In this document: positions 21,783 through 55,186 of the stretch, piece after piece | Numbering within the stretch: position 1 is the first letter of the stretch | How the letters are laid out: every line of letters starts with the position of its first letter | Source of the DNA: Hypanus sabinus | Lineage: Eukaryota | Reading direction: 5' to 3' | Assembly: GCF_030144855.1 (NCBI RefSeq) | Contig: NC_082724.1 | Span: 24,118,001-24,182,000 of the forward strand | Length of the DNA: 64,000 nt | The notes under the pieces: generated by a model | The model's database searches: none | Told to the model about the DNA's origin: nothing | Seen by the model: the letters and a program-made list of their open reading frames with translations, nothing else | Program-made: the position numbers and the translations under genes

Positions 21783-24700
21783 ACTAAACAGAGATATTAC
21801 GAATTAAGTGTAAGATCACACAAGGATCTTGCTTGGCAGTTGAAAACAGACCAGGCTTCCAAAACAATAAATGCAATTAGAACAAGTGTGAATAAAATTA
21901 CTTATAAACCTTTAGAAATTAATGAAACTTTAAAAAAATTTTACTCCGAATTATATCAATCAGAATCACAAAATGAGGTTGCTGAGATAGAAATTTTTTT
22001 ATCACAAATAACTCTTCCAAAATTGAATTCGGAAGAACAGAAAGGATTAGATATGCATTTTACATTAAAAGAGGTTGAAGAAGCTTTAGGATCACTCCAG
22101 AGTAATAAATCTCCAGGAGAAGACGGTTTTCCGCCTGAATTTTATAAAAAAAATTTAAAGATTTATTAATCCCTCCCTTCATGGAGTTAATATATCAAGT
22201 GGAAAGAACACATTAATTTCCACAATCTTTTTCGACAGCAATCCTAATAGTATTGCCAAAAAAAGATAGAGATCCTTTAAAACCAACATCATATAGGCCT
22301 ATCTCTTTGTTGAATATGGATTATAAAATAATAACAAAAATTTTATCTAATAGATTATCTAAATATTTACCAAAATTAATACATATGGATCAAACAGGCT
22401 TTATTAAAAATAGACAATCGGCGGATAATGTAACTCGGTTACTTAGCATAATTCATCTGGCACAAAAGGAGGAAATGAGTGCGGCAGTTGCTCTGGATGC
22501 AGAAAAAGCATTTGATAGATTGGAATGGGACTTTTTATTTAAGGTATTGGAAAAATATGGGTCAGGAAAATCTTATAAAATGGATTAAAACCTTAAATAT
22601 TAGTCCCAAAGCTAGTGACAAATGGTCAAATTTCAACATCATTCCAGTTAACAAGGTCAACTAGACAAGGCTGTCCATTATCACCTGCCCTATTTGTATT
22701 GGCGATAGAACCATTAGCTGAATTAATTAGAACCGATCCAGATATTGTTGGCTTCAGAGTTAACCAGGAGGAATATACGATTAATTTATTTGCTGATGAT
22801 GTTCTGATTTATTTAACAAACCCATTGCATTCGTTGCATAAATTATCTTTTAGATTGGAAGAATATGGGAAAATATCAGGGTATAAAGTAAACTGGGATA
22901 AAAGTGAAATTTTACCCCTTACTAGAGAAGATTATAGTCAATGTTGATTAGTAACTCAATTTAGATGGCTGACAAATGGTATAAAATATTTAGGTATAAG
23001 AGTCGATATTGATATAAAGAATTTATATAAATTAAATTATTTGCCATTATTGAAAAAATTCAATAGGATTTTGATAAATGGATGATGTTACCAATAACAT
23101 TAGTAGGTAGAGTTAATGCTATAAAAATGAATATATTTCCTAGATTACAATATTTATTTCAAACATTACCAATACAACTGCCCCAGAAGTTTTTTCAAGA
23201 GTTGAATAAATTCCCATTTATATACAAAATCTTCTGGTATATTTCCTCCTATTTTATCTAATTCTATTCTAATCCATGCCGGTTTATCTTCATCAAAAAA
23301 AAGATGCAATAAATCTAAGTTGATTTGCTTTATAACTGTAACCCTCCTAGGTCAAATTTCCATGTCAATTTTTCCAATGATATTCTTGACATCTTACCTT
23401 TCCAAAGGAATTTCCTCACATATTTATTTAACTCTTGAAAAAACTTCTGTGGTAATTGTATTGGTAGTGTTTGGAATAAATATTGTAATTTAGGGAATAT
23501 ATTCATTTTTACAGCATTGGCTCGACCTATTAATGTTATTGGTAACATCATCCATTTATCAAGATCCTCTTGAATTTTTTTCAATAATGGCAAATAATTT
23601 AGTTTATATAAATTCTTTATATCATTATCAACTCTTATACCTAAATATGTTATACCATTTATCGGCCATCTAAATTGAGTTATTAATTGACATTGACAGT
23701 AATCTCCTTCAGTAAGGGGTAAAATTTCACTTTTATCCCAATTTATTTTGTACCCTGATATTTTTCCACATTCTTCCAATCTAGAAGATAATTTACACAA
23801 CAAATGCAATGGGTTAGTTAGATAAATCAGAACATCATCAGCAAATAAATTAATCTTATATTCCTCCTGATTAACTCTGAAACCCATAATATCTGAGTCA
23901 GTTCTAATTAATTCAGCTAATGGTTCTATCGCCAACACAAATAGGGCAGGTGATAATGGACAGCCTTGTCTAGTTGACCTTGTTAACTGAAATGATGTTG
24001 AAATGGATACGGGAAAAGAAAGAATCTCCTATACTAAAACACTTGATTGATTTATGGAATAAGATAAGTGTTGATGATGAGAAAGAAATCTTTATTAGCA
24101 AAGAGACCTTTAATTCAAAATAAACTTATCCCTTCTACAATGGATAATCAACTTTTATATAACTGGTTTCACAAAGGGACTAGATATATAGGAGATTGTT
24201 TTGAAGGAGGTATATTAATGTCATTTGACCAATTAAAGAATAAACATAAAATATCAAACAACACTCTTTTTTGTTATTTCCAATTAAGGGCTTATTTAAG
24301 AGATAAACTGGGTCAAACAATGTTATTGCCGAAACCTAATGAAACAGAAACTTTAATTCATAAAGGAAAAATTAAAAAAATTATTTCTGGTATGTATAAT
24401 TTGATTCAAAAACAGGCAATTAAACAAGGAATTCATAAGTGAAGACAAAAATGGGAAACTGATTTGAATTGATGAAACAAGTTGGTCAAGATTATGTCTT
24501 GACAGTATGACAAATACAATAAATGTTCGACTAAGATTAGTACAAAATAACTTTTTACATCAAATATATATTACACCACAAAAAATAAACAGATTAAACT
24601 CAAATTTATCTGATCAATGTTTTCGATGTAATCAAGAAATTGGTATTTTTTTACACTCTACTTGGTCTTGTTTTAAAATTCAACCTTTTTGGACAAATTT

Positions 24701-26818
24701 AAGAGTTTTACTGGAACAAATTATTGGAATACAACTTTCACATAATCCAACATTATTTTTACTAGGCGATATCGAAGGGATAAAACTGAAATCCAAATTG
24801 AATAAATATCAGAAAGAATTTGCAAAAATTGCATTGGCAGTAGCCAAAAAGGCTATTGCAGTTACTTGGCAATCAGATTCATACTTAAGTATAGATCGTT
24901 GGAAAAATGAAATTTTTAGCTGCATTCCACTTGAAAAAATTACTTATAATTTAAGAGATAAATATGAAATATTTCTGAAAATTTGGCGCCCTTATTTACA
25001 AAAGATAGGATTAAATATATAGGTGCTCCGAAGATAAAATTATTGGTTATCTGGGGAAAGAATTAAATATACATATTAAAACTATTATGAACTCCATGGA
25101 GCATGCGGGGATCTTCCGATATCCAGGCAATCTTTCTTTCTTTCCTCTCTTTTTTTTTCTATAGGGATATGTTAGGGGGGAGGGGTTAAGGGGAGGGGGG
25201 GGAAGGGCTGACAATTTTTTTTTCTTTCTGTAACCTATTTGAAAATTCGTTAAAAATTTTTTTTTAAAAAAGAGTTGAATAAATCTGTGAGGAAGTTTCT
25301 TTGGAAAGGTAAGATGTCAAGAATATCGTTGGAAAAATTGACATGTAAATTTGACTTAGGAGGGTTACAAGTCCCAAATTTTAAGAATTATTATAAAGCA
25401 AATCAACTTAGATTTATTGCATCTTTTTTTGATGAAGATAAACCGGCATGGATTAGAATAGAGTTAGATAAGATAGGAGAAAATATACCAGAAGATTTTA
25501 TATATAAATGGGAATCCAAATGGATACGGGAAAAGAAAGAATCTCTTATACTAAAACATTTGATTGATTTATGGAATAAAATAAATGTGGATGAGATAAA
25601 GAAATTTTTATTAGCAAAGAGAACCCTAATTCAAAATAGACTTATTCCTTTTACAATGGATAACCAACTTTTATATAACTGGTTTCAAAAAGGGATCAGA
25701 TATATAGGTGACTGTTTTGAAGGAGGTATATTGATGTCGTTTGATCAATTAAAGAATAAATATAAAATATCAAATAACACTCTTTTCTGTTATTTTCAAT
25801 TAAAGGCTTATTTAAGAGATAAACTAGGTCAAACAATGTTAATGCCAAAACCTAATGAAATAGAAACTTTAATTCAAAAAGGAAAAATTAAAAAATTTAC
25901 ATCTTGTATGTATAATTTGATTCAAAAACAGACAATTAAACCAGGAATTCATAAGTCAAGACAAAAATGGGAAACTGATTTGAATTTTAAAATTGATGAA
26001 AAAAGTGGTCAAGACTATGCCTTGATAGTATGACAAATACAATAAATATCCTAATTAGATTAGTACAATACAATTTTTTACATCAATTATATATTACACC
26101 ACAAAAAATAAATAGATTAAACCCAAATTTATCTGACCAATGTTTCCGATGTAATCAAGAAATCGGTACTTTTTTTACACTCTACTTGGTCTTGTTTTAA
26201 AATTCAACCTTTTTGGATAAATCTAAGATTTTTACTGGAACAAATTATTGGAATACAACTTCCACATAACCCAATATTATTTTTATTAGGCAATATTGAA
26301 GGGATTATACCAAAACCTAAAGTGAATAAATATCAGAAAAAAAATTTATAAAAATTGCATTGGCAGTAGCCAAAAATGCTATTGCAGTTATTTGGAAATC
26401 AGATTCATACTTAACTATGGACCGTTGGAATAATGAAATATATAGCTGCATTCCACTTGAAAAAATTACTTATAATTTAGGAAATGAATATATTTTTGAA
26501 AATTTGGCACCCTTATCTATAAAATATAGGATTAAATATATAGGTCCTTTGAAGATAAAATTATTTGGGGGGGGGGGAAAGTAAAGATATATACTAAAGT
26601 TATTTTGAACTCCATGGAGCATGTGGGGACCCTCCGATATCCAGGCAATCTTTCTTTCTTTCTTCTTTCTTTTTTTCTTCTTTTTTCTTTTTTTTAGACA
26701 GGGCTGTTAAGCGGGGAAGGGTTAAGGGGAGGGGGAGGGCTATTATTAATTTTCATTACTCTATTATTCTATTCATTCTACGCAATTCTCTTAAAAAATT
26801 AATAAAAAATATAAAAAA
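21783..26818 (+). mobile_element. 5'-truncated L1-clade LINE (outer copy), split by a nested L1
   Basis: ORF2 RT fragments (KSPGEDG, SYRPISLLN, DAEKAFD, RQGCPLSP, LFADD) and C-terminal Cys region. A-rich tail; 15-bp TSD AAACATCCCACCCTG at 21768-21782 and 26819-26833. Confidence 0.93.
23212..25269 (+). mobile_element. Nested L1 with 5' inversion (twin-priming structure)
   Basis: Inverted ORF2 piece 23212-24004 plus direct piece 24001-25269. TSD AAGAGTTGAATAAAT at 23197-23211 and 25270-25284. Confidence 0.92.
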
Positions 26819-27019
26819 AAACATCCCACCCTGCAAAAATTACCCTCCAAAGGTGTATGTAATACTTTGTTTAGTGATTTTGTCTAATCTGTAAACAAAG
26901 TTAGGTGTATGCAGAAAATGTGACATTAAAATATGTACTTATATTACCATGGAGTCGTTTTTTTAAAATTCATATTACAACTTTAAGCAAGTCTACAGGG
27001 AGTTTGGCCTCATTACATA

Positions 27020-27959: not shown

Positions 27960-30253
27960 TGAATTGAGCTTTGTCCGCATTGTCCTAAGTGACTTTAAAC
28001 TGATTCAATTTCTGAAGCGTTCAATAACTCAATCTTTGGAGGTTTATTTTGGTTCCTCGCCGTCGACGCATAATGTGAAATCGCATAATGCGAATTATTT
28101 AAATTTCCAGAGGGAAATTTCCATATTATTTAAATATGTTTTAACTGTAATTTATTCACATTTTCATACCAATACGACACAGAAACAAAATTATATTTCA
28201 TCAATTTAAGGTAATATTCAACGTAGTAAATCATAGCAAGTTAACATACTAGGGTGTGCGGTACTCACCAACAGTGGCAGTGGAGATGCGTGATTGTCGG
28301 TCGTCAGGGTCATCAAGGGGTGAAGGAAGACTCACAGAACTCCTAGAACTGCCGGCAGCAGATGACACCGGTTTGAAGAAAGTGGTGAGGGTTGTTTGCT
28401 TGGCAGCATTTTGTTTCTCAGCATAAATTTGTTTGTAGGGAAGAAGGGTTGACTGCAGGGAACGACTGAAATGCTGACTCCGTTCTAAACTTGGGTCCAT
28501 GTCCATCGCCATTTGTGCCAAGTGTTCCGCAGCCTTAAAAAATTCTCCCAGTTGCTTCACCGTAAAATCCTTCACCTGCAACTCAACACTTTCTTCTTCA
28601 TCGTTATCACCTTCAGTCTGAGTTAAACGCAGGTCATCCACACTTAATTCTTCATCATGAGAATCCAGGAGTTCTAACACGTCAGCAGTCTTGAGATCTG
28701 AGAATCCTTCGCCACCAATTTTAAGGCCCAGGGCCACACAATCCTGGACAGCTGCAGTGAAGGCAGGAAACCCCTTGAGGGTGTGCACACCCTCCGCCCA
28801 AACTGATTTCCACGCTCCACTGAGAGTGGAAGGCTTGACCTCTCTCCAGGATTCATCAATATTGTTGATGGCATGTCTGATGTTCAAGGATTTCCACCAT
28901 TCCCTCACCGTTGGTAACCTCCCGGGTTTTTCAAAACCGTCTGTTGCTTGTAGCATCTGAGAGAAGGTTCGGCGTAAAAAATACGCCTTGAATGTGGGTA
29001 TCACACCTTGGTCGAGTGGTTGAATCAGCGATGTTGTGTTAGGCGGCAGGAAACGCACTGTTATGTTAGGATGAATGCTGTCCAAATGCTTAGGATGGGC
29101 TGGTGCATTGTCAAGCAACAAAAGAACTTTAAAGGCAAGATTCTGTTCCCGGCAGTAGCGTTCAGCCTCCACAGCAAAATGATTAGCAAACCAATCTTCA
29201 AAGATTTGACCAGTGACCCATGCTTTCTTGTTAGCTGCCCAGTGGACAGGAAGCATATTCTTACTCAATCCCTGAAGAGCAGGGGGGTTCAGTGAATGGT
29301 AAACTACAAGAGGCTTCATCTTACAGTCTCCTTCGGCATTGGAACACATAAGCAGAGTCAATCTATCCTGTGCTGCCTTGAAACCTGACACAGTCATTTC
29401 ATCCTTACTTATGTAAGTGCGTTTCGGCATACGCTTCCAAAAAAGCCCGGTCTCGTCTGCATTAAACACCTGCTTCGGTGTGATGCCTAACTCAGCTATC
29501 ATAGCCCGCAACTGCTCAGGGTAGCGTCCAACAGCTTCGTGGTCATCATTAGCCTGCTCACCACGCACTGCTAAGTTGTGAAGCTTGTGACGATTAACAA
29601 ACTTAGAAAACCACCCCCTACTTGCATTAAAGCTAACAATATCACCTGACACTTCCTCACTAGCCTCTGAACAAAGGCGCCCATAAATTTCCAAAGCTTT
29701 CACACGAAGATGATCGAAACTGAGCGTCGTTTTCGTCTTTGTCTCACGCTCAATGTACAAACTCAACATTTTCTCCATTTTTGTCATAATCGGGTTGCGC
29801 ACTTTGGTAACAATCTTTGAAGACACCTGTGATGAATCAACCACTGCACTTTTTATTTTCTCGGCGTTTTTCTTTATGTTTCTGATCGTGGACTCACCCA
29901 GGCCGAAGTGGCGTCCCAGAGCTGTGTTACCCTCACCCGCCTCGGCCCTGTTAACAATTTCCAACTTTTTTTCAAGTGTTAAAGCGGTTCTCTGCCGCTT
30001 GGCTGATGGCCCAGGACTTGACATCGGGCGCTTTGGAGGCATGGTTAAATACTTCAAGCACAAAGTCAGTGCGCCGGAGGTAAGGACAGCAGAAGCGTAC
30101 GAGATCCACACGCCGGCCGCCAAAACCACGGAGGGACTGCCGGAAGTGAGACCGTGAGGCGTGCACACGTGACTCGCATTGGCGGGAAAGCGGGGCGTCC
30201 CGCGAAACCGTGAATCCGCATTGTCTGAGGACGCACAGAACGAGGGTAGGGTG
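27960..30253 (-). mobile_element. Tigger-like DNA transposon body
   Basis: Transposase ORF plus subterminal cgcattg/cgcataatg motifs. Candidate 5' terminus ...aacgagggtagggtg at about 30253; the matching 3' TIR was not found. Confidence 0.65.
28249..30042 (-). CDS. Tigger/pogo-family transposase (TIGD1-like), intact 597-aa ORF
   Basis: ATG at 30042 (MPPKRP..). CENP-B-type HTH (LTLEKKLEIV; FNASRGWF..F..RH). Catalytic triad FNADETG / LLDNAPAH / QPLDQG with 32 residues between D2 and D3. Ends in KQTTLTTFF. No stops or frameshifts. Confidence 0.93.
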   Translation of the reverse strand: MPPKRPMSSPGPSAKRQRTALTLEKKLEIVNRAEAGEGNTALGRHFGLGESTIRNIKKNAEKIKSAVVDSSQVSSKIVTKVRNPIMTKMEKMLSLYIERETKTKTTLSFDHLRVKALEIYGRLCSEASEEVSGDIVSFNASRGWFSKFVNRHKLHNLAVRGEQANDDHEAVGRYPEQLRAMIAELGITPKQVFNADETGLFWKRMPKRTYISKDEMTVSGFKAAQDRLTLLMCSNAEGDCKMKPLVVYHSLNPPALQGLSKNMLPVHWAANKKAWVTGQIFEDWFANHFAVEAERYCREQNLAFKVLLLLDNAPAHPKHLDSIHPNITVRFLPPNTTSLIQPLDQGVIPTFKAYFLRRTFSQMLQATDGFEKPGRLPTVREWWKSLNIRHAINNIDESWREVKPSTLSGAWKSVWAEGVHTLKGFPAFTAAVQDCVALGLKIGGEGFSDLKTADVLELLDSHDEELSVDDLRLTQTEGDNDEEESVELQVKDFTVKQLGEFFKAAEHLAQMAMDMDPSLERSQHFSRSLQSTLLPYKQIYAEKQNAAKQTTLTTFFKPVSSAAGSSRSSVSLPSPLDDPDDRQSRISTATVGEYRTP

Positions 30254-32759: not shown

Positions 32760-33980
32760 AACCGGCAGAGTGGGGAGAGGGGAGCCAGCGGCGTCGCCCA
32801 GCCCCAGGAAGCTCCGGCTGTGCTGTGCCGCCCCTTCGCAGTGGGGCTGCGCGTCGCCGGCTGCCGCTTCCATTGAACCGCGCAGTTTATTTGCCGCCGG
32901 GCCGGGCGCCGTGGACTTTCCCTCCGCGGCCTGGGAGAAGAGCGGGGCCGGCTCATTCATGCCCGCTCTCCTGGGCGGCATCCTTCGCCTACTGCAGCGT
33001 TCGTGCTCGGCGGCCTGCTGGGCGCCGGGTCCAGGGATGCAGATGGCCGTGGTCCGCTGCGTCCCGGGCGAGGCTAAAATGACCATCTCGTTCGAGCTGG
33101 ACGGCGGGCACCGGCGGCTGGAGCGGGAGCAGAGCGAGTGCCTGCGGGCCGCGCTGGCTCGCATCGCGCACAACGTGCTGAAGGCGCAAACCAAGCCCAG
33201 GAAAGGGCGGAAGGCGGCCGAGCAGGCCCAGGCCCAGGCCCAGGCCGCGGCCCCAGATGTGGGCCTGTACCTGGAAGAGCAGGCCGTGCCCGGCGACACC
33301 AGGAACGCCGACGCCTGGCAGGACGGCGCGGAGCTGCGTGTGGGGGAAGCGCGGTACCAGGTGCAGCGAAACCCGCCGACGCTGACCCGCCTCGAGTTAC
33401 CCGCTTCGATCCTGGCCGGCTTCCCGGTCTGCCCGCAGGTCCGGATCGAGTTCGGCGAGCCGGCCAGCTCGCACTTCGAGTGGCTGAGGGAGGCCGCGGG
33501 CACCTGGGAGCCGGCGGCGAGCGGCAGAGTCTTCACCCCCGGCCACGGCCTCGTCGGCTCCAGGCTGAAGCTGCGCTGCTGCCCGGGCGACGGCAGCCGG
33601 TTCGGGCCGGCGGCCGAGCTGCAGAGCGCGGGCGCCGTGGAGGCCGGCCCGGGGGTCTGCACCTTCGACAGCCGCCACTCGTTCACTCGCCAGGCGGTGG
33701 CCGGAACGCTGCTCCGGGTGGTTTCCTACAACATCCTGGCCGATGTGTACGCGCAGACCGAGCTGTCCAAAACCACCCTGTACCCCTACTGCGCGCCGTA
33801 CGCCCTCCACGCCGACTACCGGCAGAACCTGATCAAGAAGGAGCTCAGCGGCTACCACGCCGACATCCTCTGCCTGCAGGAGGTGGACAAGCACCTCTTC
33901 CACGACAGCCTGTCGCCTGCCCTGGACGCTTTCGGCTTTCACGGCCTGTTTCGGATCAAGGAGAAGCAGCACGAAGGTCT
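32760..33980 (+). promoter_or_regulatory. CpG island covering the PDE12 promoter and exon 1
   Basis: Abrupt very high GC and CpG density against an AT-rich background. Confidence 0.85.
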
Positions 33981-34143
33981 CGCTACTTTCTTCAGAGCCT
34001 CCAAGTACCGACTACTAAGCCAGCATGATGTGACCTTCAGTGAGGCTCTGGCTTCGGATCCCTTGCACGCCGATGTTCTGCAAAAGATTTCTGCAAACCC
34101 CTCTGTCAAAGAGAAGGTGCTGCAAAGATCAACCGCCTTACAG
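32959..34143 (+). CDS. PDE12: 2',5'-phosphodiesterase 12 exon 1
   Basis: MPALLGG..AVVRCVPGE..NPP....LELP.SILAGFPVCP..CTFD.RH.FT..RVVSYNILADVY..LYPYCAPYAL..DYRQNLIKKELSGY.ADI.CLQEVD (EEP/CCR4-type nuclease). Donor CAG|gtacta. Confidence 0.96.
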
Positions 34144-39023: not shown

Positions 39024-42000
39024 ACAGTGCCCTCTTGTCAGCTACTTTACTAATGGTAAATAGCATTGTGTGAATTTACAAGGATATAACTTTACAAAGT
39101 AAATAAGTGTATAAGCATCTTTGGAGATGGTGAGTGAATGAGATTTTGTTTAACAGGACACTGCAGTAATCAGAATCATAGGGCAGCAGAAACTGGATAG
39201 AATACATTTAAAATTTTAAGTGTAACTTGTGATCAGAATAATCCAAAATAATGTAAAAAATAAAATCAAGCATGATTGGAATTTCTTCTAAATAAACTTA
39301 ACTGAGCAAAATCACTCGTCTGCCTGCAGTTCACACTGTGATTCAACACAAGTTTAGTTATCAATGCAGATAATGTATACACATGCAAACTGCCAAAATG
39401 TCAAAGTGAAAATATACCTTAATTAATGTGCATTTCCAAGTTCATAGTACTTCAAAAATAGTGTAACACATACAAGAAATGCTGGCGGGAATCTATGGAA
39501 ATGAATAAATAGTTGATGTTTCAGGCTGAGACTCTTCAGGACTGGAAAGGAATGGTGATGCAGGAAAAGATGATTTAAAATATTTTCTCTTCACATGACC
39601 TAAACACAATTCAGTGGGAATGGGAAGTGCCTGGATTAGAATAAATATCTAATGCAATAAAATGAAAATTAATTTAGATCAAAATAAGTAAGCTGAAGTC
39701 TGAACTAGTATGCTAACTGTAAGCCAAGATGTAGCTGTTGCCCTGTAGCCCAATGCCTCTTCACCCCTCCCAAGTTTTACAATCAACAACGTAAAATTGC
39801 TGTGCTTCTATTAGGAAACTTCCACTAACATCTTATACCAAAACCCCAATCCAAGTAAATATTTACTATATTTCTTGGGTGAACTTCCATTTCTTAATGT
39901 GGTTTCAATGGCACTGATATACTGTCAAATACTAATTAAGAAATCATAGAACTCAAAATATACAACTTTAGTTATTTACATGAATTGGACAAATGCATTC
40001 AAAGGGGAGCTAGACAAACAGTTGGAGAAGTGAAGAGGAAATACACCCTGTTTAATGAAGGTGGCAGGAGCCTGGGTGGAAAAATGGATTATAAGGAAGG
40101 TACAATACAAAAGCAATGGGAAAATATTCTATCAAAACCAGTTAATGAAAAAACTGTCATTCTGTTTCTGTCCCCAACTAAACTGACAGATTGTTCATTT
40201 TCTGTAACCCACCCATAATGATTTGCAGCTATCACACATCAAATGTGTTCTCGCTGAAGTGATAATCATTACATGTACTTTTCTCACCTGATTAACAATC
40301 ATTACAAATTTGGAAAAAAAATAATTTTACCTGTGCTCAAATAACACATTTACTTAGAATAAGTCAGCCATGTTACTTTTATTGATAGCCATCCATTGTT
40401 GTTTCTTTGATATTCTAATATATAAACACAAACTAGGAACATACACCTTGTTAAACAGTGAATGTCAAAAATCCTGATGGTCTTTGCAAAACACACCTGT
40501 TTATTCCATTCCATAGATGCTGCAAGACCCGCTGAATTTCTCCAGCATTTTGTGGCTATGGATTTCTAACATCTCAAAGATTTTTACTGCTCCACACGAA
40601 AGTCACTGTGAGGGATGCCTACCCTTAAATTTAAATCTTTTCTTTGATGGGAGTTCAGTGAGACCCCTCTGATTTCTGCTGCCCTATGATTCTTCAATCA
40701 TTTACTCATCTAGACTGGGAGTGGGGTGGAATTCTCTCCTCATCTCTTCTATTCCTCACCATCTTCTTACCTCTTCTAAACAGCAACTGGATAGAATACA
40801 TTTAAAATTTTAAGTGTAACTTGTGATCTGCAAACAAATTCAAACAAGCAGTTTTCAAAAGTAGGAACAATGGGAGCAGACATTAGGATAGGAACATAGC
40901 CCTGGATTAGTAGTCATTTTTATTTTTTTTCCCACAGCAGTCTGACCAGTTATATTTCAAACTACCACTCAAATTATCTTTTGCTGTTTGTCTGGAAACA
41001 AAACTACCATTTTTATAAATGCCTTGAAAACAACTTGAGCAATCAGTGCCCACCCTCAAGTTTAAATTGCACAAAAAATAGTATTTGAATCAAGTAAATT
41101 ACCAATGTTGTATAAACCTTTATTACATTTAAAATCAATGGACTCCTTTCATTATCTGAATGTTGATTTTCAAGTTTTAGGAAGACTTGCCCATCCAAAG
41201 TCAAATATACCAACATTAACTATATTACACTGAATACCACCACACACCAGCAACAGTAACATGCAATACTTTAAAAGTTACAACTTTCAATACAATTGAA
41301 CTTCAGTGTTTAGAAATGCCAACATGAAAGAAAGAATGCTTAAGACTTTGATTTTTGTTGTTTAATGTTTACACCACAGTTGAGTACACAGCTTGTTTTT
41401 TTATAACAAACTGAATTTGTACCATTAAATAGGAAGAACTGAGGACAGATGTGAAACTAGTTATATATTGCCAAAAACAAGTACAGTATCTACAAGACTA
41501 TTTAAACCCATAATCTTGTATTAAACTAGCCAGTATCACAAATACCTTTGGAGTTGTTTCAATGGAACATAAACGGGTTGTTCTGGCCATAATGTTAGAA
41601 TCAACATACGTATAAAGTCAAAGCAATGTCTGTGCAATCAGTGAATTCTCCATTAGGTAAATATTATTTCCCGGATTCCAACATGTGTATCCACCTCTTT
41701 ACTCAAGTCTATTCAGGAGCCACATCCAATATTATTAAAATGGAAAGTAACTGGTGACCATTTTCACAATACAAATTACAATTTTTCAGCAGATTGATTT
41801 AGCACGACCTGATGTATCACAGAACTTAATACAAAGGTAAAGTAAAAAAGTTCATTAGGTAAATGTACTTAATGTTAATTTCTTAAAGATAGTACAGAAG
41901 TTCATTTCAACTAGGATATAAATTGGGAAAAATGTATTTTTCCCCACAGTGAGTTAACTATAAACTATCTGTTTAAACTTCCAATTTAGGAAACCTACCA

Positions 42001-51434: not shown

Positions 51435-53907
51435 TAGAAACATAGAAACTAGGTGCAGGAGTAGGCCATTCGGCCCTTCGAGCCTGCACCACCATTCAGT
51501 ATGATCATGGCTGATCATCCAACTCAGAACCCTGTACCTGCTTTCTCTCCATACCCCCTGATCCCTTTAGCCACAAGGGCCATATCTAACTTCCTCTTAA
51601 ATATAGCCAATGAACCGGCCTCAACTGTTTCCTGTGGCAGAGAATTCCACAGATTCACCACTCTCTGTGTGAAGAAGTTTTTCCTCATCTCGGTCCTAAA
51701 AGGCTTCCCCTTTATCCTTAAACTGTGACCCCTCGTTCTGGACTTCCCCAACATCGGAATCAACCTTCTTGTATCTAGCTTGTCCAATCCCTTTAGAATT
51801 TTATACGTTGCAATAAGATCCCCCCCCACCCAATCTTCTAAATTCCAGTGAGTATAAGCCTAGTTGATCCAGTCTTTCTTCATATGAAAGTCCTGCCATC
51901 CCAGGAATCTGGTGAACCTTCTCTGTACTCCCTCTATGGCAAAAATGTCTTTCCTCAGATTAGGGGACCAAAACTGCACACAATATTCTAGGTGCAGTCT
52001 CACGAAGGCCTTGTACAACTGCAGTAGAACCTTCCTGCACCTGTACTCAAATCCTTTTGCTATGAATGCCAACATACCATTTGCCTTTTTCACCGCCTGC
52101 TGTACCTGCATGCACACCTTCAATGACTGGTGAACAATGACACCCAGGTCTCGTTGCACCTCCCCTTTTCCTAATCGGCCACCATTCAGATAATCAGCTG
52201 TTATCCTATTCTTGCAACCAAAGTGGATAACCTCACATTTATCCACATTAAATTGCATCTGCCATGAATTTGCCCACTCACCTTACCTATCCAAGTCACC
52301 CTGCATCCTCTTAGCATCCTCCTCACAGCTAAAACCGCTGCCCAGCTTCGTGTCATCTGCAAACTTGGAGATGCTACATTTAATTCCCTCGTCTAAATCA
52401 TTAATATATATTGTAAACAACTGGGGTCCCAGCATTGAGCCACTAGTCACTGCCTGCCATTCTGAAAAGGTCCTGTTTACTCCCACTCTTTGCTCCCTGT
52501 CTGCCAACCAATTCTCTATCCACATCAATACCATACCGCCAATACCGTGTGCTTTAAGTTTGCACACTAATCTCCTGTGTGCGACCTTGTCAAAAGCCTT
52601 TTGAAAATCTAAATATACCACATCCACTGGCTCTCCCCTATCCACTCTACTAGTTACATCTTCAAAAAATTCTATAAGATTCGTCAGACATGATTCTCCT
52701 TTCACAAATCCATGCTGACTTTGTCTGATGTTTTCACCTCTTTCCAAATGTGCTGTTCTCACATCTTTGATAACCGACTCTAGCATTTTCCCTACCACCA
52801 ATGTCAGACTCACCGGTCTATAATTCCCCAGTTTTTCTCTCCCTCCTTTTTTAAAAAAGTGAGGATTCCTCCAATCCTCAGGAACTAATCCAGAATCTAA
52901 GGAGTTTTGAAAAATTATCATTAATGCATCCACTATTTCTTGGGCTACTTCCTTAAGCACTCTGGGATGCAGACCATCTAGCCCTGGGGATTTATCTGCC
53001 TTTAATCCCTTTAATTTACCTAACACCACTTCCCTACTAACATGTATTTCCCTCAGTTCCTCCATCTTACTAGGCCCTCGGTCCCTTACTATTTCTGGAA
53101 GATTATTTATGTCCTCCTTAGTGAAGAAAGAACCAAAGTAGTTATTCAATTGGTCTGCCATGTCTTTGTTCCCTATGATCAATTCACCTGTTTGACTGTA
53201 AAGGACCTACATTTGTCTTGACCAATCTTTTTCTTTTCACATATCAATAAAAGCTTTTACAGTCAGTTTTTATGTTCCCTGCCAGCTTTCTCTCATAATC
53301 TTTTTTCCCTTTCCTAATTAAGCCCTTTGTCCTCCTCTGCTGGTCTCTGAATTTCTCCCAGTCCTCAGGTGTGCTGCTTTTTTTTTGCTGATTTATGTTT
53401 CTTCTTTGGACTTGATACTGTCCCTAATTTCCCTTGTCAGCCACGGGTGCACTACCTTTCCTGGTTTATTCTTTTATCAAACTGGAATGAACAATTGTTG
53501 TAGTTCATCCATGCGATCTTTAAATACTTGCCATTGCATATCCACCGTCAATCCTTTAAGTATCATTTGCCAGTCTATCTTAGCTAATTCACATCTCATA
53601 CCTTCAAAGTTACCCTTCTTTAAGTTCAGAACCTTTGTTTCTGAATTAACTATGTCACTCTCCATCTTAATGAAGGATTCCACCATATTATGGTCACTCT
53701 TACCCAAGGGGCCTCGCACGACAAGATTGCTAACTAACCCTTCCTCATTGCTCAATACCCAATCTAGAATGGCCTGCTCTCTAGTTGGTTCCTTGACATG
53801 TTGGTTCAGAAAACCATCCCACATACATTCCAAGAAATCCTCTTCCTCAGCACCCTTACCAATTTGGTTCACCCAATCTATATGTAGATTGAAGTCACCC
53901 ATTATAA
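51435..53907 (-). mobile_element. Younger 5'-truncated CR1 LINE nested in the older CR1
   Basis: Long ORF2 pieces (MGDFNL, KSPG.DGLHPRVLKE, YLDFQKAFDKV, SKFADDTKL); (GTTTCTAT)n 3' end at 51435-51449. Confidence 0.92.
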
Positions 53908-55186
53908 TAGGGTTGTAATAGGTTGTAAGGTAGATAGGGTTGTAAAGAAAGCTTTTGGGACATTGGCCTTCATAAATCAAAGTATTGAGAACAGAAGGTG
54001 GGCTGTTATGTTGAAGTTGTACAAGATGCTGGTGAGGTCTAACTTGAAGTATTGTGTGCAGTTTTGGTCACCTATTCAAGTCAAATCAAGAAATAAAATT
54101 AATTAAATTCAATTCTATATCCAGGAACAATGTAAACGAGGTTGAAAGAGTACAGAGAAAATTTACAAGGATGTCACTGGAACATGAGGATCTGAGTTAT
54201 CAGGAAAGATTGAATAACTCAGAACTTTATTCCTTAGAACATAATAGATTGAGGGGAGATTTGATAGAGGAAACAAAATTATGAAGGGTACAGATAGAGT
54301 AAATGCAAGCAGGCTTTTCCCACTGATGTTGGGTAGGACTACAAATAGAGGTCATGGGTTAAGGTGAAAGGTGGAAATTCTAAGGGGAACATGAGGGGAA
54401 ACATCTTCACTCAGAGGGTTGAGAGTGTGGAATGAACTGCCAGTGTAAGTGGCGCATGTGAGCTTGATTGCAACACTTAAAAGAAGTTTGGATAGGTACA
54501 TGGAAGAAAGGGCTGTGGTCCTGTTGCAGGTTGAAGCAAGTAGACAGTTGAAATGGTTTGGCATGAACTAGATGGGCCAAAGGGTCTGTTTCTGTCCTGC
54601 ACTTTTCTATGACAATGACAATAGCAAGGAAATAATTTAAACTGCATAACCGCAAAAATGTATGGCTGCAGGAAGAGTCAGAGGAGGACGCAGTGATGGC
54701 AAGCAGCTCATGCACATCATTTCATTATTGAAGGTCTGCTAAGTAATTTTCTGTTCACTGCCAAGTATTGTAAAACAAAACTAAACACATCCAATATTAC
54801 ATAAAGCACTTGCCACCTCTCATATAAACAATGAATTGTGACAGAAATGTTATTCCTATCAACGGGCAAATCCCAACTATACTCCAAATCTTCAGGACTG
54901 GATTCACGTTTGCCACTTCTACCTACCAACACCAAATACGCTGTGGACATGACGTCAATCTCAAAGTATTTCAGATTAAAAGCATCACAATCTCAGATTA
55001 TGAACTACAGATTAATGTGTCAATACTGCTGAACTTTCAGACATCTGACACATTCATCAAAAACCTGCATCTTGCAGAAATTTCCAAAAATGTATAATGG
55101 ATCTCTATTTATAATGATACAATTTGTACAGAAGGAAACAAATGGCAAAACATGGAGATTGCAAATGAAACTATCCATAAGTCTCA

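Follow-up and report, generated by a model that had tools for sequence, protein, structure and literature searches.

The stretch of DNA analysed here (the window below) comprises 64,000 nucleotides (nt) of the stingray Hypanus sabinus (assembly GCF_030144855.1, contig NC_082724.1, positions 24,118,001 to 24,182,000 of the forward strand), and coordinates are given as positions in this window. A 2,058-bp fragment of an L1-clade retrotransposon, called the inner L1, was identified at 23212-25269; it sits within an older member of its family, and its 5' part is in inverted orientation. The best explanation of this arrangement, and a very probable one, is that one target-primed reverse transcription (TPRT) event with twin priming placed the inner L1 in an older, 5'-truncated member of its own family. 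Twin priming is a known side effect of L1 retrotransposition that is familiar from mammals, and it has been characterised almost entirely with mammalian L1; the model for it was reportedly given by Ostertag and Kazazian in 2001.

The inner L1 was enclosed by a target-site duplication (TSD) of 15 nt with the sequence AAGAGTTGAATAAAT, the 5' copy being at 23197-23211 and the 3' copy at 25270-25284, both on the + strand. The two copies were identical at 15 of 15 positions and each was placed exactly where homology to the element ended, and the chance that this 15-mer would recur within a few nt of both homology boundaries was about 3e-7. The last two bases of the 5' copy (AT) could be assigned equally well to the inverted segment.

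Two segments lay between the TSD copies. One is the inverted 5' segment (23210-24004, - strand, 795 nt), which contained the reverse transcriptase (RT) and thumb part of open reading frame 2 (ORF2), equivalent to about residues 650-920 of human ORF2p. Another is the direct 3' segment (24001-25269, + strand), which contained the C-terminal part of ORF2 with the CCHC motif, the 3' untranslated region (UTR) and a short A/T-rich tail. The inverted segment was marked in the repeat scan by the inverted repeats I1-I5 against the adjoining outer sequence, with which it formed an inverted repeat of 583 bp. Neither a tail nor a TSD of its own was present on the inverted piece (sequence at 23205-23235 and 23990-24010), and one TSD enclosed both the inverted and the direct piece. 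The tail of the inner L1 was very short, with A5 T9 followed by 4-6 A (25252-25269/71), the higher count being reached if the TSD's first two A are included. The inner copy is dead.

The outer L1 spanned 21783-26818, with a length of 2,963 bp when the insert and one TSD copy were left out. Its left part (21783-23211, + strand) reached from just past the endonuclease through RT and stopped in the inner target site, and its right part (25285-26818, + strand) contained the rest of ORF2, the 3' UTR and an A-rich tail. The RVT_1 domain (Pfam) was found in the outer ORFs 22253-22588 and 22615-22947. Stop-to-stop translations revealed that the outer copy was itself 5'-truncated, starting downstream of the ORF2 endonuclease region. 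It was flanked by a perfect 15-mer TSD of its own, AAACATCCCACCCTG, at 21768-21782 and 26819-26833 (both + strand). When the segment 23197-25284 was compared with the window by self-BLAST, the family was represented by two copies only, the inner and the outer one. The style of integration was alike in both copies, with a 15-nt TSD and an A-rich tail, and the outer target was a T-run followed by G.

Much of this anatomy had been proposed in a first-pass annotation of the window. The 15-bp TSD around the inner element held at every position, and the division into an inverted 5' part and a direct 3' part was confirmed when both halves were aligned to the outer copy in the orientations proposed. 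Nesting in an L1 of the same family was also correct, because the outer copy, which was homologous to both inner parts, has its own perfect TSD around both flanks. The "A tail" stood in part: an A-rich 3' end is present, but it has only 4-6 A, placed after A5 T9.

Two further observations were made on the family. In the 3' UTR of both L1 copies a (TCTT)n pyrimidine run was followed by a G-rich tract (25131-25205 in the inner copy and 26649-26740 in the outer copy), and the G-rich tract itself (inner 25174-25205, outer 26710-26740) had five runs of at least 3 G, which is formally a G-quadruplex motif. A comparable G-rich polypurine tract exists in the 3' UTRs of mammalian L1. A homopolymer in ORF2 differed between the copies, with A6 in the outer one (23046-23062) and A7 in the inner one (23571-23588), so that the frame was shifted (KKFNRILIN versus KKIQEDLDK). 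The protein P0004, a more distant member of the family, ended with a similarly shifted reading, which suggests recurrent slippage at the A-run.

To align the inner L1, the flanks of the inner block were joined with the block and one repeat copy taken out, and both halves were aligned against this reference. The inverted part (24004 back to 23210) aligned as reverse complement to outer 22630..23211 joined to 25285..25515, with 733 matches and 60 mismatches (92.4%), and the alignment was unbroken across the site in the outer copy where the inner element had inserted. The direct part from 24001 to 25202 aligned to outer 25518-26738 with 90.1% identity. The remaining inner 3' UTR aligned to the outer terminus ...AATTC..TTAAAAA(A)TT, which was followed by A/T-rich tails that differed between the copies. 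Divergence from the outer copy was thus similar for both parts (92.4% and 90.1% identity, Fisher p = 0.08), as would be expected if both had come from a single source RNA.

The unrearranged state at the inversion point could be read in the outer copy at 25506-25527 as ...AAATGGGAAT-CC-AAATGGATAC..., where ...GGGAAT-CC-AAATGG... at 25510-25523 is the uninterrupted state. Proteins P0011 and P0013, two independent members of the family, one of which is annotated in Hypanus sabinus, read ..FIYKWE(S/P)K(W/L)I.. through the inversion point; because they are contiguous there, the outer copy is a fair reference for the unrearranged state. The T at 25515 was the last outer base matched by the inverted part, and the direct part began at 25518, hence by maximal assignment CC (outer 25516-25517) was lost.

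At the 5' junction the microhomology was 2 nt, AT both ending the TSD and beginning the inverted part. The inverted part closed with ...GTTGAAAT and the direct part opened with AAATGGATAC..., so that at the inversion junction both shared AAAT (24001-24004), as determined by comparison with outer 22630 and 25518. No filler bases were found at the junctions, and the joint chance of microhomologies of 2 nt and 4 nt was about 2e-4.

Two of the counts in the first-pass annotation need correction on these grounds. It had given a loss of 3 nt (TCC) at the inversion point, where the alignment to the outer copy leaves only CC missing, and a microhomology of 1 nt at the TSD junction, where 2 nt (AT) were measured. 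Its 4-nt microhomology (aaat) at 24001-24004 agreed with the junction strings. The central claim of a twin-primed (5'-inverted) L1 insertion was upheld by the single TSD, the direct 3' end with tail, the inverted part adjoining it in the element with a 2-nt gap, and the microhomology at both junctions.

Affiliation of the element was assessed with its translated frames. A 202-aa open frame in the inverted segment (23330-23938, - strand) matched human L1 ORF2p residues 671-871, which cover the C-terminal part of RT and the thumb, with an E-value of 5.5e-45 and an identity of about 45-50% by eye, and L1 ORF2p was the sole kind of protein matched by this frame. In the direct part, the ORF at 24507-25022 matched the C-terminal CCHC domain of human ORF2p (residues 1100-1247, E-value 2e-6), with the C..C..H..C stretch covered. 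The piece of the outer copy across the inversion point aligned to about residues 841-943 of human ORF2p, thus the inversion point lies near residue 920. By these protein matches the element is assigned to the L1 clade of non-LTR retrotransposons. A second, unrelated long interspersed nuclear element (LINE) was observed in the window at 51500-54700 (- strand), with Exo_endo_phos_2 at 53480-53980 and RVT_1 at 52286-53182. The latter had weak and about equal similarity to L1 and R2 proteins, which places the second LINE in a clade other than L1 as judged from its protein, and indicates that the clade test discriminates.

The anatomy of the inner L1 and its L1 affiliation are thus direct observations. 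The order of the enzymatic steps would be that of the established mammalian model. The L1 endonuclease would nick the bottom strand at ...CTCTT/GAAAAAA, and the T-ended 3' OH would prime reverse transcription on the short A-rich tail, with the cDNA extending back to about position c (outer 25518). The top strand would then be cut 15 nt downstream, and its freed 3' end ...ATAAAT-3' could anneal by AT inside the same RNA at position b (outer 25515). A second cDNA would start from b, just upstream of c, and end at position a (outer 22630), which lies about 0.8 kb further 5'. After removal of the RNA, the cDNA ends would pair via AAAT (4 nt), be filled in and be ligated. Such steps would leave TSD - inverted b->a - direct c->3' end - tail - TSD, minus the CC that separates b and c, and this geometry is the one predicted by the twin-priming variant of TPRT (PMC2912911, PMC4245944). 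The bottom-strand target of the inner copy, CTCTT/GAAAAAA, is T-ended and purine-rich, and that of the outer copy is GTTT/GTAAAA (n=2 only).

Several points weigh against a single twin-primed insertion. The inner target CTCTT/GA departs from the canonical TTTT/AA, and the A tail is short (4-6 A behind the T9 run). At 90-92% identity the outer copy is only an approximate stand-in for the source element, and the counts of lost and shared bases could be off by about 1. The public read data were Logan contigs of 70-150 nt, with depths from thousands to hundreds of thousands, from four runs taken out of a set in which no run contained more than 0.45 of the words of the stretch. These contigs show the family and not the locus, and thus neither confirm nor contradict the assembled arrangement. 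A joint in these contigs ("skips 2090") was considered as an empty allele and rejected: it is another uninterrupted copy of the family, with different letters at the site.

Other histories could give a similar structure. If an ordinary 5'-truncated L1 had inserted and a DNA inversion had later flipped its first 0.8 kb, the order of segments (b->a, then c->end) would be identical, and inversion breakpoints repaired by end joining also show small losses like CC and short microhomologies. Such an inversion is nevertheless improbable, since its left breakpoint would have needed to fall 0-2 nt from the TSD/L1 boundary, with the TSD intact at 15 of 15 positions and no uninverted L1 bases left of it, a coincidence estimated at about 0.1-0.2% over a 2-kb element. 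The very high abundance of L1 copies in the stingray genome (contig depths) gives some room for two independent insertions side by side, one of them a fragment of L1 in antisense and the other a 5'-truncated L1 in sense orientation. This is hardly credible and is effectively refuted by the anatomy: the antisense piece was not a separate TPRT product because it had no element 3' end, no poly-T and no TSD of its own, a single TSD enclosed both pieces, and their spacing of 2 nt in element coordinates would be a coincidence estimated at about 0.3%. An origin by snap-back or foldback was rejected as well, as the inverted and direct parts did not overlap in element coordinates.

It could also be supposed that no second retrotransposition took place, and that parts of the outer L1 were copied locally at the DNA level, by replicative template switching or inverted duplication, to form the inner block. 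The two blocks are neighbours and members of one family, and the 583-bp inverted repeat with the adjacent outer sequence would suit such an origin. We consider it very unlikely, since the inner block ended exactly at the 3' terminus of the element, with a tail unlike that of the outer copy and then the 15-nt TSD, and a template switch would not give a TSD; moreover, the inverted part ran uninterrupted over the insertion site in the outer copy. Over 150 residues the inner copy was 90.7% identical to the independent copy P0001 versus 84.7% to the outer copy, and a four-way protein comparison pointed weakly in the same direction, with 4 informative sites joining inner and P0001 versus 1 and 0 for the other groupings. 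Three-taxon counts of "private changes" against P0001, P0011, P0013 and P0004 were inconsistent between references and confounded by frameshifts, and were not relied on. An artefact of assembly has a similarly small chance, whether it came from a long read that was chimeric or folded back or from the mis-joining of L1 copies. Misassembly is classically met in repeats and palindrome-like structures, and the short contigs do not span the locus; yet a foldback gives near-identical arms, whereas the arms here were 8-9% diverged, and mis-joins fall within shared homology and would not make a perfect TSD, a separate tail and overlaps of 2-4 nt. The window was also without N runs. Later inversion, local template switching and misassembly each call for an improbable coincidence or run counter to the 8-10% divergence between the copies.

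The twin-primed insertion could be compared with 5'-inverted L1 of human and chimpanzee. For human L1, the TSD length peaks at 14-16 bp, at their 5' junction about 70% of the 5'-inverted copies show microhomology of 2-5 bp (PMC2912911), and extra nucleotides are rare in the 5'-inverted copies (Kojima 2010, PMC2912911). The stingray locus resembles the human and chimpanzee cases in having one TSD of about 15 bp, a tailed direct 3' part, an inverted part derived from the segment immediately upstream with few nt lost, microhomology at both the inversion junction and the 5' junction (2-5 bp at the latter), and no added nucleotides (PMC2912911). The stingray values for TSD and microhomology are mid-range in the human distributions. 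Differences from the human and chimpanzee L1 were also observed: the L1-clade family is native to its host, a batoid cartilaginous fish, the tail has only 4-6 A after A5T9, the target is CTCTT/GA and not TTTT/AA, and the site of insertion lies within an older member of the element's own family.

In cell assays, 5'-inverted inserts have TSDs of 10-20 bp with a peak near 15 bp (PMC4245944), as in the stingray. In these assays 5' inversions were obtained with human L1 in human cells; in chicken DT40 cells human L1 gave none, zebrafish ZfL2-1 gave none either, and Nimb-2_DR gave a 5' inversion only once. The conclusion drawn by the authors was that the occurrence of inversions depends on the host as well as on the LINE (PMC4245944). 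Unlike the cell-culture inserts, the stingray case concerns a native L1 in the germline of a cartilaginous fish. In the searchable literature nothing was found that connects twin priming with sharks, skates or rays: "twin priming" and "shark" occurred together only in a review of L1 in human brain disorders, and an Anolis paper merely cites a twin-priming reference.

The mechanism is therefore already known, and the host group is new. The locus is a clean and internally referenced example from a cartilaginous fish, which as one data point is a modest addition. It indicates that the pathway of resolution known from the human cases is open to a native L1 in the repair environment of the stingray germline. 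That twin priming is ancestral to jawed vertebrates, as the first-pass annotation had suggested, is plausible and a reasonable hypothesis, which a single locus cannot establish. Roughly 30% of hominid-specific L1s are twin-primed. It is possible, though we lean slightly against it, that twin priming is frequent in native batoid L1 integration, near the hominid level of about 30%, and that it is ancestral to L1-type TPRT with a 15-nt stagger in jawed vertebrates, not dependent on a mammalian host in the way that the cell-culture results suggested. The L1 family described here offers a way to measure the frequency of twin priming outside mammals.

Other features were also observed in the window. 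Exon 1 of PDE12 was located at 33037-34143 (+ strand) and ended at a GT splice donor; over 369 aa it was 100% identical to Hypanus sabinus PDE12 isoform X1, and the next match was Mobula birostris with 89%. By this match the window derives from the Atlantic stingray or from a genome that cannot be told apart from it, which bears out the chondrichthyan host supposed in the first-pass annotation. An uninterrupted ORF of 639 aa was present at 28249-30168 (- strand), starting from GTG, with 597 aa from the first ATG. Exact-sequence look-up of the window ORFs, including this one, in the protein collection gave no match. In addition, a direct repeat of 48 nt with 98% identity was found at 39187-39234 and 40781-40828, 1,594 nt apart, and a perfect inverted repeat of 21 nt (39172-39192 and 40673-40693) overlapped its left copy. 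These repeats may represent either a long duplication of a target site or the termini of some insertion.

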